Shown: in pieces, positions 49,089 to 58,377 of the stretch | Layout: the number at the start of each line of letters is the position of its first letter | Numbering within the stretch: position 1 is the first letter of the stretch | NCBI GenBank assembly: GCA_977017575.1 | Contig: CDRNVI010000002.1 | Location: 310,001 to 374,000, forward strand | Direction of reading: 5' to 3' | Length of the DNA stretch: 64,000 nt | DNA from: Paramoeba atlantica | Lineage: Eukaryota > Protista > Discosea | Translations under genes and position numbers: made by a program | Notes under the pieces: generated by a model | Database searches by the model: none | What the model was told of the DNA's origin: nothing | The model's input: the letters and a program-made list of their open reading frames with translations, nothing else

Positions 49089-50318
49089 TCACAGTTGACT
49101 TTTATGAACCTTCGGCACGTCATCCGGGAACTCCTCCTCAAGCGGCAGCGTCATCGCATAGGTCACCAAATCCTGCGCACTCATCTTCCCCTCCAGCAAC
49201 TGCGCCACCGCGGACAAAATCGGAACCCGAATCCCCAACCTCTCCGCCAACCTCTTTGTCGCCTTCGCCGTCGGCAACCCCTCCACCACCCCCCCTGCCC
49301 CCTCCAACGCCTTCTCCACCCCCACCCCGGTCGCCAGCAGCTGCCCGAACTTCGCATTCCGACTCAACCCCCCATAGCAGGTCAGCATCAAATCCCCCAT
49401 CCCGGCGAGCCCCCCCATGGTCTGCGAGCGCCCCCCGAGCCCCACCACGAGCCTGCGGAGGTCCGCCCAGCCGCGGGTGAGCAGCCCGTTGGTGGTGTTC
49501 GGCCCCAGCCCCAGGGCAACCGCCATGCCGCACAGAATGCTCAGCACGTTCTTCAGCGCGGAGCACGCCTCCACGCCGCGCACGTCCGTGCTGGTGTAGA
49601 CCCGGAACACGTCGGAGGAGAGGGCGCGCTGGACGAACCGGGCGGTCGGGGGGCTCGCCGAGGCGACGGTCACCCACGTCGGCCGGGCCTCCATGACCCC
49701 GCGCGCGAAGCTGGGCCCCGCGAGGAAGGCGGTGGGGTGGTGGGGCCCGAGCTCCGCGGAGAGGATGTCCTCGATGAAGTGGAGCGTGTCGACGGCAATG
49801 CCTTTGCTTACGGAGAGGACAGGGACGGAGGGGGGGAGGTGGGGTTTGAGCGCCCGGAGGTAGGCACGGGAGAATTGGACCGGGATAGCGTGGATAAGGA
49901 GAGTGGAGCCGGGGATGGCCTCGGTGGGGGAGGTGGTGGCGGTGACGGTGGGGGGGAGGGGGGATTCGGGAAAACAGAGCGTGTTGCGGTGATGGGTGTT
50001 GATGTGGGTGACGTGTTTGGTTTCACTCTCCCGCATGAGAATCTTTACGTGATGGCCGCTTCGTCCTAGGGTACATGCCATGGCAGTACCAAACGCTCCA
50101 CCCCCCATCACGCACACACGCATGATTTGTGTAGGATGGCGTAAAGGTCGGGAGGCGAGGTCCTTATGAATGAGCGCCATTTCCGCGTGTGTTACGAAAC
50201 GTGGAGAGGCGCAGTGCTGTTGTGCCAGATCCCTCGCAATCACAGCACACAATTCGGGTGTGACGGAAATAGTGTCCCCGGCAAAGTGGTTCTGCACAGC
50301 AATCAAAACTTGGTCCAT
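49089..50318 (-). CDS. GPD: NAD(P)+-dependent glycerol-3-phosphate dehydrogenase with PTS1-like C-terminus
   Basis: GGGAFGTA, SKGI, GPSFA, LKNV, GDLMLTC...SRN, VVEG; ends -SQL; start set at MDQVL because the longer ORF begins inside a MITE. Confidence 0.93.
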   Translation of the reverse strand: MDQVLIAVQNHFAGDTISVTPELCAVIARDLAQQHCASPRFVTHAEMALIHKDLASRPLRHPTQIMRVCVMGGGAFGTAMACTLGRSGHHVKILMRESETKHVTHINTHHRNTLCFPESPLPPTVTATTSPTEAIPGSTLLIHAIPVQFSRAYLRALKPHLPPSVPVLSVSKGIAVDTLHFIEDILSAELGPHHPTAFLAGPSFARGVMEARPTWVTVASASPPTARFVQRALSSDVFRVYTSTDVRGVEACSALKNVLSILCGMAVALGLGPNTTNGLLTRGWADLRRLVVGLGGRSQTMGGLAGMGDLMLTCYGGLSRNAKFGQLLATGVGVEKALEGAGGVVEGLPTAKATKRLAERLGIRVPILSAVAQLLEGKMSAQDLVTYAMTLPLEEEFPDDVPKVHKSQL

Positions 50319-50373
50319 TTTCCTCGGAAAAAAGGCAGTAAAAAGTAGTACATACGGTAGTAAGGTATACGTA

Positions 50374-50551
50374 ATGTCCCCCCGTTTAAGCGCACCTCGT
50401 TTTCCGTGAAAAGTGCGCTTAAACGGGGGGGGGGGGGGCTGAATCTGTACATAAAAAAAAATTGGCGCCGCTTCGCGGCGCCGCAGTCTACACCTCACCT
50501 CTATGTGCGCTTAAACGGGGGTCTGACTGCGTGCGCTTAAGGGGGGGACAG
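50374..50551. mobile_element. 178-bp CTGT-family MITE
   Basis: TA-(A/C)TGTCCCCCC..TTAAGCGCAC inverted ends; central GGCGCCGCTTCGCGGCGCC hairpin. Confidence 0.75.
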
Positions 50552-50739
50552 TATATGTAGTAGTAAGGTATACGTAGTAAGGTATACAGTCCAGCTCTTG
50601 GCTCCCCCCAGGCTGCAGATCGCACCGTAAGAGCTTTTGACCCGATTCCTTCGGCATTCAACAGATCTCGAAAAACTAGAGCGTTTACTGCCGTCATTTT
50701 GACCATACCGACCCCTATGCGCATCATGGCTAAAAAATA

Positions 50740-50910
50740 CAGGAAAAAATAGGTGTTTTTTTTCATAATTTAAAAAAATCCATTTGTTCCAATTTTTCAG
50801 AGCTTTTTTCTTTATAAATGGTTTCTCATTCCCCCAGCTAGCCTCGTACCCCGCGGCGGTACCAGTCTTGTACTGCCGCCTGTACAATCTGGGCATTGCC
50901 TTTCTCATTC
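50740..50910 (-). mobile_element. 5'-truncated 3' end of a second copy of the CRE-like retroelement
   Basis: Encodes KGNAQIVQAAVQDWYRRGVRG*, matching the end of ORF 51241-52704 (KGNAQIAHAAVQNWYRRGVR*). Confidence 0.85.
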
Positions 50911-51240
50911 AATGAATTTGCGGGATACTCCCGTTCAATCTACACAAGGACAGTATATCAACTCTCCCAAAAACAAAACACCCCCAATCAGTCATAAAAT
51001 AGTGCGATGAATCCAATAGAGAACGTTTGGTCCATAATGGACCGAATTGTAAAGGAAAAATTGAGGGAGATACTGTGCCCCCCCACTTTTTCGAAAAAAG
51101 GACAATTAAATGGGGGGGATCAATTTATTTGGTTAGATGAAACAAAGGTCCCAAACTTTTTTCATTATTTTAGGAATGAAAACAGGTTTAGGAAGCAAAT
51201 GAAAGAAACCTTTTTTTTTGTTTGTCCGCCCCCGAGCCCA

Positions 51241-52704
51241 TTAGCGCACGCCCCTACGGTACCAGTTTTGTACCGCGGCATGCGCTATCTGGGCGTTCCC
51301 CTTTTGGATGGCTACCCCGATTGCCATGATGAAGTGGCTGAGGCAACCATTCTTCTCGCCGGTGGCCTTCCGAGCGACCAGATTTAGAAACTGGAGGGTC
51401 TCGGGTCCGGGGACACCGTACGTGGTGAAGGCCAAGGGGAAGAAATCCATCTCCCTGTCCCCCGCCATTTCCTCGTGAGTGCGCCTTTTGAGACGCTCTG
51501 CCTGCCTCACGGTGAAGGAGGGATCAGCAGCCTCCTTATCTACGTAGGACGGGGCCAGTGGGTTTACCACCGTCGCGTCCACTAGGACTAGCTTCCGCCC
51601 CAAAAGGAAACAAATGTCCGGTCCCCGACCGTTATCGAATCTAGGTTCGACGAGGTCTGGGGAGAATCCGTACTGGATTAATAGGTTGCGGAAAGTTTCC
51701 TTGACCCCCTTGTGGCGAGAGGCTTGTGTCTTTCCCCGAACCTTCTTACAATCCATGGCGTGGACGCAGAACTCCTCATTTTTGAGGGCCGCGCCACACA
51801 CACATTGGATTTCTGGTTCGGAGGTGGGGGCCACCATGTACCGGACTCTAGCGGCGGTCTCCCATTCGGGATCCCGCATGTAGTACTCCGGCCTGTTCGG
51901 CCACGCATTCATCCACTTGGTCGAGTGGATGTTCTGGATCTGTCGCATGCAGACCAGATGCGTGGCCGACGGTGCCTTGTCCAAAGCAGCCGCCCCATAG
52001 GCGCGTCTTTGCTCCCTGGCGGGGGTGCCGGGGGACTGGCCTTGTAAGGCCTTGACTGCTTTGGCCTGCATGTCCTCCGCTTTGTCTTCGAAGGGGATGG
52101 TGCCCAGGAAGTCCGCCGTAAAAAGTTTGTTTACGAACGGCGTCGTTCCCATAGCACCCATCCCTCCGATAAGAGCTTCGGAGCATGCGGTGATGGCCGC
52201 GTCCACCTGCAGGTTCGCCTTTTTGGTCACCCCCGGTTCGTGCGTGCGAACTATGTGGTTCCACCGGGGGCTCCCGCATAGGCGGAGGAGAGGGAGGGCG
52301 CACTGTCTGGGTAAATCCTTGAGTTTACCCAGGAAATTAGTGACCTTGGGGACCTTGGAGAGGACCCATTCCTCTTCCCGCGCTTCCGAGGCGCCAATGT
52401 ACGCCCCCAGAAGTTTCAGTCCCCCCGGACCGTGTTGCATCCGGCTCCCCGAGAAAGCCGTGTGCAGGCCTGGGTGGCGGGTAGCAACCTTGCACTTGGC
52501 CAGCTGTGCCAGGCTGTCCGGGGAAGGCGTGATGTCACCCTGCTCCGTCACCGCGCCTTGGGTATTGGGGGGCGTGACACTGGGGGCCTTGTAGGGAGGG
52601 TCCGTCCCAGCCATATGGGGGTAAGGCGGCGGAGGGGAGGTGGGGCACTCGCATTCCTGACGGGAAGAGTTACGAGGAGAAGTAGAGGCCGCGATTCCCT
52701 CCAT
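51241..52704 (-). CDS. CRE/SLACS/CZAR-like non-LTR ORF2: RT thumb + CCHC knuckle + restriction-like endonuclease, RT palm absent
   Basis: GLKLLGAYIG; CVCG...HAMDC; SRH; EPRFDNGRGPD...LVDATVVNP...AERLK; FFPLAFTTYG; no YxDD in any frame of the ORF track. Confidence 0.88.
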   Translation of the reverse strand: MEGIAASTSPRNSSRQECECPTSPPPPYPHMAGTDPPYKAPSVTPPNTQGAVTEQGDITPSPDSLAQLAKCKVATRHPGLHTAFSGSRMQHGPGGLKLLGAYIGASEAREEEWVLSKVPKVTNFLGKLKDLPRQCALPLLRLCGSPRWNHIVRTHEPGVTKKANLQVDAAITACSEALIGGMGAMGTTPFVNKLFTADFLGTIPFEDKAEDMQAKAVKALQGQSPGTPAREQRRAYGAAALDKAPSATHLVCMRQIQNIHSTKWMNAWPNRPEYYMRDPEWETAARVRYMVAPTSEPEIQCVCGAALKNEEFCVHAMDCKKVRGKTQASRHKGVKETFRNLLIQYGFSPDLVEPRFDNGRGPDICFLLGRKLVLVDATVVNPLAPSYVDKEAADPSFTVRQAERLKRRTHEEMAGDREMDFFPLAFTTYGVPGPETLQFLNLVARKATGEKNGCLSHFIMAIGVAIQKGNAQIAHAAVQNWYRRGVR

Positions 52705-52914
52705 GATAGTACCTGCCCCACCCGGGGTAGGGGTTGTAGCGCCAGGGGTAAGGACATTTTGGGTCTCCCTCCGGGCCCGCCACGTCTTAGAATGAGGACC
52801 TGGGTTTGCCTCGATACAGCCTCTGCGGAGGTTGCATTGAACAACACGGGTGGTCCAGCCCGTTTCGCTTACCAGGGTTTCCGTGGGAAGGAAACAGCAA
52901 AGGAGCCCTTCTTC

Positions 52915-54666
52915 TTAGTTGCGGGGCTCCCAGGCACCGGTCATGATCCGGGGGATACCCAAGACCTCGTTCAGACCGGCGGGGATGTCGTGCGCCGCAC
53001 TCACCCCTGGGGCGGAGACCATGCCGTGGTGTGTCCCGTCATACACCCTGACTGTGGCTCCATCGCTAGGCCCTGGGGGAAAGGGGGGAAGGGAGAGGCT
53101 GACCGCGACTCTTTGCGCTCTGTCCAGCCCTTCCCAGTCGGTGATGGGGGTGGCTTCGCCGGAGATGTCCTTCGGCAGCAGGCTCTCTCCGGGGACCCCT
53201 AACGTGTTGCCCACAATGCTGATTGTGGCTTGAAACGAGCGTTCGGGCGGGCAGGGGATGACTATGTGACCCACGCGCTCGGGGCCAATGTCGAGGAGGA
53301 TTTTGAGGACCTCTTCCCCAGCCGGCTCGTATGGTTTGTCCGGGACTTCCCCACAGGGTGCTCTCGCCTGTATCGGGTACGCGCCCGACCTGTCCGCCAG
53401 TAGAACTGGGGGGAAAGGAGAGGGGGGAGGGAGGAGAGGAGGGAAGTTGGGAATGGGGGGATGAAAGGAGCGTAGGGGGGGCACGGGCCATGGAGGTCCT
53501 TTAGCCACTGTGTTGACCTGGGCCAAGCGCAGGCGGGCTTCCTCGGCGCAGAACCCCTCATAGTACGCCAGCATGGAGGCGTACCGCTCCGTTTTGATCC
53601 GGAGGGCTTCAGGGGCATGCTCCTTTAGCAGGGCAATAGATGCTTTCCTTAGCCGCTTGGGACCGTGCATCTTTACTAGGTGCGACTGTAGGGCTACATG
53701 GTGGGGTTGGGCTACCCCACATTCAATGCAGACCAAATGGCCCGCATTGATCAGAAGAAAGCGATCCTCGATGGCTTTCTGGGCCGCGTGCAGACCACTG
53801 ACAGCCTCCAGGGTCAGCTCACGGCGTGCCCGGGCCTCCATTTCCTCAAGGGAGATCCTCTCGTGCTCCGAGTGTAGGGTCGAGAGGAGACGCAGAGAGA
53901 CAGAGCATCTTCTAGTTTGTGCTAGAGGGAGCCCCGAGCTAGAAGGGGAGGGGAGGAGTTTAAAGCGCACAGCGTCCATCTCCTTGAACTGCTGCGCTAG
54001 CGTGGGGAGTTTCGGCGGACGCTCCGACGGGGCGGGGGCGTCGCTGTCCATCGCGTCCGACGTGATCGGGGGGGCGGTCGCCAGGCCAGGCGTCGAGATG
54101 CGGGAGTATGACGTGTTCCGACTGTCGGAGGTAGGGAGGGGAGCGAAGGAAACGTTGGCAGCTTTCCTCAAGATGGGGGTGGGGGCGACCGTAGTACCTG
54201 TACGGTCAAAGCTCCGGGATCTGTCCCGAGAGGAAGAAGAACGTGGGATCCTGCGGGCTGTGGAGTTGGCTCGGGAGGATCGAGAGGAAGACGTGGAACG
54301 GGATGGAGGGGTCCCTGAGGCTTGCGTCGAGGCACGCACTCTAACGTCGTTCCTGTGCCGAGAGCGCAGAGTAACGCACTCCTCACACAGGCGGTTGTCC
54401 CGCCTGGTTGGCACGAAAGGGAGGCCACAGAAGTCGCAGGCACATGACTTGTGCTGCTCCTTGACACGGACGACCAAGTCCGGCCTCGCCTTCTTCAGCT
54501 CCTCGATGGAGAGCTGGCGCAGCCCCTCGGCCCCTACGGAGGGGTGGGGGCTGGAGCCTCGCCTGAGAGGGGTGGTAGCAAGTCCCCCTGAGGTCGAGGA
54601 TGATGGGGTGTTAATCCCAGTATCGGAATCCTTGTATCCCCGGTGGCCACGCCGACGTCTGGTCAT
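52915..54666 (-). CDS. Retroelement ORF1-like protein with C4 and C2H2 zinc fingers
   Basis: CDFCG...LCEEC; CIECGVAQPHHVALQSHLVKMH; basic and Ser/Pro-rich tracts; directly upstream of ORF2. Confidence 0.75.
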   Translation of the reverse strand: MTRRRRGHRGYKDSDTGINTPSSSTSGGLATTPLRRGSSPHPSVGAEGLRQLSIEELKKARPDLVVRVKEQHKSCACDFCGLPFVPTRRDNRLCEECVTLRSRHRNDVRVRASTQASGTPPSRSTSSSRSSRANSTARRIPRSSSSRDRSRSFDRTGTTVAPTPILRKAANVSFAPLPTSDSRNTSYSRISTPGLATAPPITSDAMDSDAPAPSERPPKLPTLAQQFKEMDAVRFKLLPSPSSSGLPLAQTRRCSVSLRLLSTLHSEHERISLEEMEARARRELTLEAVSGLHAAQKAIEDRFLLINAGHLVCIECGVAQPHHVALQSHLVKMHGPKRLRKASIALLKEHAPEALRIKTERYASMLAYYEGFCAEEARLRLAQVNTVAKGPPWPVPPLRSFHPPIPNFPPLLPPPSPFPPVLLADRSGAYPIQARAPCGEVPDKPYEPAGEEVLKILLDIGPERVGHIVIPCPPERSFQATISIVGNTLGVPGESLLPKDISGEATPITDWEGLDRAQRVAVSLSLPPFPPGPSDGATVRVYDGTHHGMVSAPGVSAAHDIPAGLNEVLGIPRIMTGAWEPRN

Positions 54667-54811
54667 GGGCTTGCGCCGGGGAGAGAGAGAGTAGAGGTAG
54701 AAAAAGAAAAGGATTCAACTTTAGGAATCTCCAAAGCGTTCGGATAAAGTTGGCTTTACAGAAACGGTATCTTTATCGTATGAGTAGTTTTTCTACCTCT
54801 CCCGTACTAGT

Positions 54812-54823
54812 GTAGTAGTAGTG

Positions 54824-54897
<74 letters not shown>
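54812..54897. repeat. (GTA)n microsatellite, ~28 units
   Basis: Directly visible, one GTG interruption. Confidence 0.98.
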
Positions 54898-55878
54898 TTC
54901 TTTTGTCAAACCGCTATAAGGTATGGGGTATGATAGAGCACCGACTCGTGGAGTAGGAGGGCATATTGTAACCCAAGCATGAAGGCGACGTGGGCGAGAC
55001 GATTCGGACGGTGGTGGCGAATGACGGTTCGCAGAGAGGAAAGGTTCGCAGGGAAGAAGGGAGTGGTGGTGGTGGTGGGGAATGGTTGTTCGCAGAGAGG
55101 GGAGAAGAAGGGAGTGATGTTGGAGGACAATGACGGTTCGCAGGGAGGGGAGAAAGGAGGGGTGGTGGGGGTGAATAACTATTATCCATACAAAGGAAGT
55201 AACCGAAAAAAAGTTAGAAACGTAGGTATAGCATATTGTAACATGAAAAACTTGAACTAGACAGTATATAAATACAAACTGACGTCGGGCCCTGATATAC
55301 TGTATGTATCAGGTTCGTAGGGAAAAAATTGAGCCCCCCCTCAAAAAAAAATCCGGAGCCGCTTCGCGGCGCCTCCTGCCCAGTCTCGCCAAAAAGGACA
55401 ATTAAGTGGGGGGGGGGGGACTACGACAATTAAGTGGGAGGGGGACACAGTACTACCCCCTCGCTACCGTAGGTAAATTCGTCGTGCCCGATTTCGTGCC
55501 CGATTTGTGGCCCGATATCGTTTCAGGTGAGTTTTCGAAAAAAATGTTTACAAAGACGTATGTATCGAATAGAGTGACATGATCACTAGTTTTTATTATG
55601 GGTGAAGCTAAAAAAATATATTTTTCCGAAAATCAACTCCTAGACCGCTTTTTGAGAGTTTGGGGCCTGATATACCTGCATACACTTTGGTTTCATTCGA
55701 TATTTCTCCATCCTGTGCCGGTAATTCACTTACAAAGGCTAAAATCTACCTGAAAGTGTGTGACACACAAGGCCGTAGAGGAAGGAGGAGGCGCAAGGCA
55801 AAAAGGCAGAAGGCGGAGCCTTCTGTCTTTTTGCCGCAGCGACGACGACTTCCTCGCGTGGGAAGCTGTAAGGGGTGG

Positions 55879-56144
55879 AAGTATAGGAATATTGCATAAG
55901 TATAGGAATATTGCATAAGTATAGGAATATTGCATAAGTATAGGAATATTGCATAAGTATAGGAATATTGCATAAGTATAGGAATATTGCATAAGTATAG
56001 GAATATTGCATAAGTATAGGAATATTGCATAAGTATAGGAATATTGCATAAGTATAGGAATATTGCACAAGTATAGGAATATTGCACAAGTATAGGAATA
56101 TTGCACAAGTATAGGAATATTGCATAAGTATAGGAATATTGCAT
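55879..56144. repeat. 19-bp tandem array (AAGTATAGGAATATTGCAT) x14
   Basis: 266 bp = 14 units; three units end in C instead of T; about two more units at ~56488-56523. Confidence 0.98.
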
Positions 56145-56274
56145 AGCCGTCTAATCATGTCACAAAATACTGTGAATTGGTTTAGTATAGGTTTAGTTTT
56201 TGGGTATCACGCTTTCACGTGACTCAGTGGCCCGGCCGGCCCCTCCGTGCGTTCGGCCTCTCATTTCCCCCAAA

Positions 56275-57322: not shown

Positions 57323-58377
57323 TAAACCCGAGACCGAAAAACGGCTCCGAAAGGCAATAAAGAAAGCCTTTGCAATGCTTAAGCGTCATCCTTATCGACG
57401 CCAAGTTTTAAATTGTGTAAATTCTGTTCCTAAATGCTTGCGCATTGTGCAGCGCGTTCAAGGAGACCATTGTGGGTACTAGTGCATAGGAATTTGTACT
57501 CATTTCTTATTTTTTTACCCCCCGTGAAAAAGCAAAATTGGGGGAAATTTCCCAACTTTCACCACGCCCACCTAGGACCCAGGGGGGGGGGGGGTGATAG
57601 GCAAAGCAACGGTGGGAAACGCACTAGTTTTTCGAGATCTGTTGAATGCCGAATGAATTAGGTCAAAAGCTCTTACGGTGCGCTCTGGAGCCTGGGGGGT
57701 GCGAGCCAAGAGCTGGACTGTATGTATGGTAGTAAAGCCTATAGGATGCGCAATATTAATTTTGCAAATTTTTCTATTTTAGTGGCTTCGTTAAATGCGG
57801 TGGTTGTTTTCAACTTAGAAGTCACTCATGCTGCGCGCTTCGCGTTGAAAACGCGTTGAAAACTACCTCCGCGTTTAACGGAGCCACTAAAAAAGAAAAT
57901 TTGCCAAAAGAACACGAATAACGTATTTTTTTGGGTAAAAAAGCTCCCGTTTTCGGCGAAAATTGCGAAATTTTAATCCAAATTCGGACTTTTTTTGATG
58001 CCTTACCAGTAGGGGCAGGGGCCGCATCTGCCAAAAAAAATGTCGTAGAATGGTAGCCGAGATCCCAAGCTCTTAAAATACGTTTTACACACCTTAGCAG
58101 TTAATTAATTAATTTACTATTAACAAATTAGCACAATTAATTTGCAATTAATTAACAAATTAGAAGAATTTGTATATATTAGATTCATCCCCATCGCTGT
58201 TTGTATAATGAAAGAGTCATCCCTGAGAGAGAGAGAGAGAGAAACATATTGGAACTCGCATGGGTCCCATGGAATGTAGAGTTCGTGCCGCAGGGGCTGC
58301 GCGATTCGCGGACGATTCGGAGCGGGAGGAGTCACTGGGAAGCTACGTATTTTTGAATGGACATCTATAATACAGTA

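Follow-up and report, generated by a model that had tools for sequence, protein, structure and literature searches.

A retrotransposon copy without its reverse transcriptase core in Paramoeba atlantica: most probably a single defective member of a multi-copy family

Background

Non-long-terminal-repeat (non-LTR) retrotransposons of the CRE clade (CRE1, CRE2, SLACS, and CZAR) insert at one fixed position of spliced-leader (SL) RNA genes (PMC12278014), and SLACS/CZAR-type elements have been reported in bodonids (PMC4728078). Elements that lack reverse transcriptase (RT) have also been described: RIME and NARTc are deletion-derived non-autonomous relatives of ingi and L1Tc (PMC12278014), and MoTeR2, a CRE-like relative of MoTeR1, is without the RT region (PMC7367193). 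The present analysis concerns a stretch of 64,000 nucleotides from Paramoeba atlantica (assembly GCA_977017575.1, contig CDRNVI010000002.1, forward-strand positions 310,001 to 374,000; hereafter the window), in which an earlier note had described a CRE-like retroelement that keeps a zinc-finger protein and a restriction-like endonuclease (RLE) but no RT. Three readings had been offered, namely a non-autonomous lineage that borrows RT in trans, a co-opted nuclease, or just a recent deletion. The results favor the last of these: the element is most probably one defective member among the many copies of a non-LTR retrotransposon family, that is, an ordinary broken element with a private deletion, now decaying.

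Loss of the reverse transcriptase core

Two minus-strand open reading frames (ORFs), at 52915-54666 (583 amino acids (aa), "ORF1") and 51241-52704 (487 aa), are present and open as previously reported, and the motif [YF]xDD is indeed absent from every sense frame of the element. In DNA alignments with other copies of the family, the 5' part of the element aligns up to 52502 and the 3' part from 52502, with 865-1278 bp lying between the two parts in those copies. The longest copies have 1254-1278 bp in place of the window junction, and relative to these versions the deletion in the window keeps the reading frame. Because the other copies carry this extra sequence at 52502, all matches to the 487-aa ORF except the window and one twin begin at its residue 67-68. 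The junction (52501..52503, minus strand) joins SPDSLAQ to LAKCKV at 52502 with a 1-nt microhomology (T), and is thus 24 codons upstream of the position near 52430 first proposed for it; the Pro/Ser-rich "leader" that precedes it is the normal polyprotein sequence upstream of the RT and not a new leader.

What is missing can be read from the relatives. Their additional segment holds the Pfam domain RVT_1 (E 4e-21 in the copy on contig C54, 1.5e-19 in L009, and 2.7e-20 in L012) and a YLDD or YIDD motif located 33 codons upstream of the AKCKV that corresponds to the junction. The RVT_1 match in the relatives ends just downstream of the junction-equivalent position, and only the last few positions of the model are retained in the window. 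These belong to a C-terminal RT remnant and linker to the endonuclease (51967..52500, minus strand), which starts with AKCKV, includes the GLKLLGAYIG motif at 52422-52393 named in the original description, and aligns C-terminal of the RT in 1654 library relatives. Close relatives with RT share 95-97% nucleotide identity with the window copy. The alignments show that one in-frame deletion of ~1.25 kb, with 1-nt microhomology, took the RT fingers and palm, including YxDD; it may have occurred either during reverse transcription or later in the chromosome.

A search of the organism's own 45.7-Mb assembly with a 120-nt probe for the junction produced end-to-end matches only at the window and at C12:550725-550844, with the 35 other matches covering one half of the probe only, so that a count of copies sharing the deletion, as the earlier note had proposed, returns the window and its C12 twin. 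All other loci whose endonuclease match reaches the junction have RT sequence upstream, except L020. This locus was considered as a second RT-less copy and rejected: it is a copy of the common 5'-truncated kind, its start lying ~15 nt further upstream, within unique DNA of unrelated sequence. With the junction found only at the window and its twin, the RT-less form is evidently a single locus and not a lineage. A junction confined to the locus and its allelic twin, alongside RT-bearing copies of 95-97% identity elsewhere, is also the outcome that the earlier note had named as telling against its own proposal.

A non-autonomous lineage that makes its own endonuclease and zinc-finger protein but depends on full-length relatives for RT, on the model proposed for MoTeR2 and MoTeR1, is accordingly very unlikely, even though several features would suit it. 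The copy retains both element ends, a 2A-like motif (see below), and the endonuclease, and its deletion preserves the frame; apparently intact possible RT donors exist in a subfamily of 77% identity (frames up to 1465 aa, several identical copies); and MoTeR2 offers a precedent in a CRE-like family (PMC7367193). However, the junction occurs at one locus, on both haplotypes and with identical flanks, no second or dispersed insertion of the deleted form was found in the own assembly, and a stop codon is already present in one allele. MoTeR2/MoTeR1, RIME/ingi, and NARTc/L1Tc resemble the window form in that both termini of the autonomous relative are present and RT is absent, whereas MoTeR2, RIME, and NARTc have been amplified into many dispersed copies. 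Instead of several insertions with the same deletion, the probe recovers the window and its allelic twin only, and most of the coding sequence is retained.

Allelic comparison and selection

The C12 copy and the window have the same flanks on both sides (a gene for glycerol-3-phosphate dehydrogenase (GPDH), a (CTA)n run of differing length, and a tandem repeat), and contigs C2 (which carries the window) and C12 share four element sites in the same order. Given these common flanks and this collinearity, the C12 copy evidently lies on the other haplotype, or on a large duplicate, rather than being a second insertion. Similar near-identical locus pairs on different contigs (C2/C12, C44/C66, C29/C49, C51/C60, and C25/C69) are found across the assembly. 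Much of the genome thus seems to be present there as two haplotypes, and copy counts would be roughly doubled.

The same pair of contigs bears on the possibility that the RT segment was collapsed out during assembly. The family is repetitive, as such an artefact would require, but the identical junction is present on C2 and C12, which differ by allelic single-nucleotide polymorphisms and indels around it; both flanks consist of unique sequence, and public runs contain 26-40% of the sampled words of the stretch. An artefact is therefore extremely improbable.

Between the window and C12 there are seven differences in 3509 bp, comprising two synonymous, four missense, and one nonsense change (TAC to TAA); positions 52915, 52666, and 52248 are among the sites that differ. 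The neutral expectation for seven allelic differences is 5.3 non-synonymous changes, against five observed; the allelic changes thus look neutral, with no sign of constraint after insertion. Comparison with more distant copies gives a different picture. The ratio of non-synonymous to synonymous rates (dN/dS) in the endonuclease part ranges from 0.07 to 0.27 in pairwise comparisons with other copies, and the changes private to the window lineage in this part are seven synonymous and six non-synonymous (P = 0.018 against neutrality). The dN/dS check suggested in the earlier note consequently has a divided answer, pointing to past selection but not to constraint since the insertion. The intact catalytic residues would thus be an inheritance from an active ancestor, most of the divergence having built up in an active, selected lineage.

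These data also bear on the co-option (domestication) of the copy as a nuclease or zinc-finger gene retained by the host, a highly improbable explanation. A complete set of RLE catalytic and CCHC residues, a confidently predicted fold, and the open frame of 1157 aa in the C12 allele would each be expected of a retained gene. In place of a maintained frame under purifying selection, however, the window allele is interrupted by a TAA and the allelic changes are five non-synonymous to two synonymous, in what is a small sample; moreover, the copy sits within a nested heap of transposons and is only ~3-5% diverged from ordinary copies.

Under the favored explanation of an ordinary broken element, the remaining frame would be open mainly because the copy is young and derives from an active, selected lineage. 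The window copy would be unable to copy itself, there is no indication that it is copied in trans, and it would now be drifting, a nonsense codon having already appeared in one of the two alleles. Several considerations count against this explanation. The physical reality of the junction, and its expression, rest on two independently assembled contigs (C2 and C12), and the allelic comparison comprises seven differences only. The deletion is in frame and the C12 allele has its 1157-aa open frame, and a functional product would look alike. Finally, the genome search scores the best candidates, so that a diverged additional copy of the junction could escape it, although a near-identical one would not.

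Structure of the polyprotein

The 583-aa and 487-aa ORFs, previously described as two separate ORFs, lie in the same frame, and the sole break between them is a TAA at 52917-52915 that is absent from the allelic copy. Past this codon the frame continues with EEGLL, passes through CIEANPGP, and reaches the final stop at 51241. The premature stop (52915..52917, minus strand) is TAC (Tyr) in the C12 allele, which is an unbroken 1157-aa frame, and Tyr is also found at this codon in C44 (L048; NYEEGLL), C54, and L033. The copy on C54 carries a stop of its own six codons further on, at a codon for Cys in the window and for Trp in C44, while L034 (contig C30) is open through this point for 828 aa. 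The C12 and other Tyr codons, the read-through in L034, and the frames of up to 1465 aa in the 77%-identity subfamily argue that the native structure of the family is a single ORF, consisting of a zinc-finger N-terminal half, the 2A-like CIEANPGP, RT, a CCHC knuckle, and the endonuclease.

The N-terminal half of the polyprotein (52918..54666, minus strand, 583 codons) is conserved in at least 30 other copies. Its two zinc fingers, as claimed for ORF1, were located as a Cys4-type motif (C-x2-C...C-x2-C; 54438-54376, minus strand) and a C2H2 finger (53730-53665, minus strand). The 2A-like (StopGo-type) motif CIEANPGP (52795..52818, minus strand) links the zinc-finger half in frame to the RT-endonuclease half. 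The Asp of the canonical 2A motif is replaced in it by Cys, and the same motif is found in C54 and L008. Such sequences are known in APE-type non-LTR elements and in the trypanosome ingi/L1Tc (PMC3708506). Searches of the isolated ORFs were less informative: Pfam returned nothing significant in the 583-aa or the 487-aa ORF, and a single-sequence search of the 487-aa ORF against the PDB gave no match. The AlphaFold (AF2) model of the C-terminal 159 aa of ORF1 has a predicted local distance difference test (pLDDT) score of 35, and an Atlas feature search gave scores <0.8, with a ubiquitin-like lead that is weak only.

The endonuclease and its affinities

The zinc knuckle and endonuclease residues reported as intact are so by comparison with relatives: in a 34-sequence alignment, the window copy retains every invariant or nearly invariant column (CxC...Hx3C, RH, PD, D, K, and GN). 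The CCHC knuckle (CxC-x11-C-x-H-x3-C; 51748..51804, minus strand) accounts for the invariant columns C55, C57, H69, and C73. The RLE domain follows at 51244..51747 (minus strand), a span supported by both profile and predicted fold, with RH at 51717-51712, the Asp of PD at 51618-51616, the second Asp at 51579-51577, and the Lys at 51489-51487, all on the minus strand. Among 1.84 billion representatives scanned in full with HMMER, 1654 relatives were retrieved at E <= 1e-3, and in the long relatives the conserved region is C-terminal with RVT_1 upstream. Against the PDB, the profile matches the R2 RLE domains of 9nl3 and 9dou (E ~1e-13) and 8gh6 (E 1e-7). The AF2 model of the RLE has a pLDDT of 95.6, and its top seven Foldseek matches are R2 proteins (R2Tg, R2Pm, and R2Bm; TMq 0.55-0.67), followed by weak matches to PD-(D/E)xK nucleases. 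By profile and by predicted fold, then, the domain is a genuine R2-type RLE.

The hallmarks of the R2 supergroup are divided between the window copy and its family. The window copy has the CCHC knuckle and the PD-(D/E)xK-type nuclease with RH(D/N), (K/R)PD, D, and K, while an RT N-terminal to the endonuclease in the same ORF is found in the family (RVT_1 in L003, L009, and L012 and in the library relatives P0001, P0025, P0029, P0063, and P0032) but not in the window copy, where the segment is deleted. Evidence of target-primed reverse transcription is provided by the A-tail, the 9-bp target-site duplication with empty sites, and the 5'-truncated copies. The sequence features and the modeled fold together identify the element as an RLE-type non-LTR retrotransposon. 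It resembles R2 and other RLE elements in the C-terminal CCHC and RH...PD...D...K residues, in the RVT_1 directly upstream in full-length relatives, and in its A-rich tail, target-site duplication, and many 5'-truncated copies. In contrast with R2, the family is not specific to ribosomal DNA and has diverse flanks; in its polyprotein the 2A-like motif marks off a long N-terminal half with zinc fingers; and the window copy is without the RT core.

Extent of the element and its insertion site

The whole inserted unit, an RLE-type non-LTR retrotransposon copy with an internal deletion, occupies 51178..54719 on the minus strand (3542 bp), in place of the 51120-55260 initially assigned to it. These limits follow from DNA alignments in which more than 40 other copies align from 54719 to ~51211, and the 5' terminus GTTGAATCC is common to other copies of the family. 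Copies of the target repeat without the insertion, in which the 80 nt upstream and the downstream sequence adjoin, occur at at least 15 other places in the genome (e.g., C26:267023-267157). Because the two flanks overlap by 9 bp in these empty sites, the element is bounded by a target-site duplication ATTCCTAAA, with its upstream copy at 54720..54728 and its downstream copy at 51169..51177 (both minus strand). The stop codon, a 15-nt 3' untranslated region, and a short A-rich tail (ACAAACAAAAAAAAA) lie at 51211..51243 (minus strand); the 3' end is a short A-run 30 nt past the stop, and similar A-runs end other copies. The 9-bp duplication and the A-rich tail left behind show that target-primed reverse transcription brought the element into a Tc1-like DNA transposon.

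Between the A-tail and the duplication are 33 extra nucleotides (51178..51210, minus strand) that are foreign to the target repeat and absent from empty target sites. Positions 2-32 of this stretch match C70:288031-288061 and C44:724337-724367 at 100%, and 3' transduction or a template switch is a possible source.

The target is a Tc1-like repeat with a C-terminal piece of the transposase at 51007-51177 (plus strand), which, by our own reading, is suggested by its NPIENVW motif. At its two ends the nest has 107-nt inverted repeats (50584-50686 and 57617-57723; 91% identity), giving a Tc1-like transposon of 7.1 kb. In addition to the retroelement, this transposon contains a 57-bp tandem repeat array at ~55730-56160 and a (CTA)n run at ~54800-54900. 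The run, like the Pro-rich ORFs at 54800-55260, is flanking sequence outside the retroelement. The same Tc1-like element contains, at 50830-50905 on the minus strand, a 76-bp fragment with the last codons (…GNAQIVQAAVQDWYRRGVRG) and the stop of the 77%-identity subfamily. This fragment is a second insertion with the same orientation and with extreme 5' truncation. The neighboring gene at 49089-50498 encodes an NAD-dependent glycerol-3-phosphate dehydrogenase, and an Rfam search of the window gave no hits.

The family in the genome and the spliced leader

In the own assembly there are at least 91 matches to the 487-aa ORF and at least 79 to the 583-aa ORF, falling into subfamilies at roughly 90-97%, 72-80%, and 45% protein identity; full-length copies were examined within loci of ~±1.5 kb. 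Many copies are 5'-truncated (e.g., L020 and L022-L029), and flanks are unrelated among ten other 5' junctions and nine 3' junctions. Loss of internal sequence is seen elsewhere in the family. The copies on C44 (L010/L037/L048) and C66 (L036/L027) form an allelic pair with both flanks in common at 98-99% identity, and C66 is without 1468 bp present in C44 that span the linker and much of the RT, with ~13 bp of filler at the site. This deletion is private to C66 and independent of that in the window, indicating that internal deletions arise in resident copies. C66 also has a ~5-kb insertion, with a possible 24-bp duplication, that has no counterpart in C44.

The likeness to the CRE clade lies in the host, a kinetoplastid-like protist with a spliced leader. 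The element is of the RLE type, but it does not share the targeting of SL genes that defines the CRE clade: the window copy interrupts a Tc1-like repeat, and the flanks of other copies bear no relation to one another. None of the relatives returned by the sequence searches is a named CRE, SLACS, or CZAR element, and R2 structures are the only named references among them. It is correct that no SL gene flanks the window element, yet other copies of the family have spliced-leader tails at their 5' ends. Direct fusion of the leader's 3' part (...GATAAAGATACAGTTTCTGTACCTT) to the first base of the element, with variable 5' truncation, is seen in L057 and L038 and partly in L034. Unlike the CRE arrangement, this is not a split SL gene, and the fusion has the signature of a trans-spliced RNA template rather than of insertion into an SL gene. 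A 26-mer of the leader was counted 691 times, at scattered places on both strands of the assembly (control, 0), a pattern that suggests retroposition of trans-spliced RNAs on a wide scale.

An SL-like stretch that differs from the leader by several mismatches, ACGATAAAGATACCGTTTCTGTAAAG, is also present in the Tc1-like target repeat, at 54757-54782 (minus strand). The surrounding 80-nt block is repeated in at least 20 places with 92-100% identity; the stretch was considered as a part of the element and rejected, as it belongs to the target repeat.

Implications

There is a very small chance that the 1157-aa frame of the C12 allele is transcribed and translated, with a product that acts on the family. 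If so, it would act either as an incipient trans-mobilized element or as a competitor, with nuclease and RNA-binding functions but no RT, of the active relatives with which it interferes. As a broken copy, the locus is a routine case of how retrotransposon copies die by internal deletion and yet still look intact. It also carries a caution, in that a list of ATG-to-stop ORFs is not a gene structure: the two "ORFs" are one polyprotein split by a young nonsense mutation. The more useful result is at the level of the family, which is of the RLE type, not specific to SL genes, and equipped with a 2A-like motif, and some of whose copies start with spliced-leader sequence.

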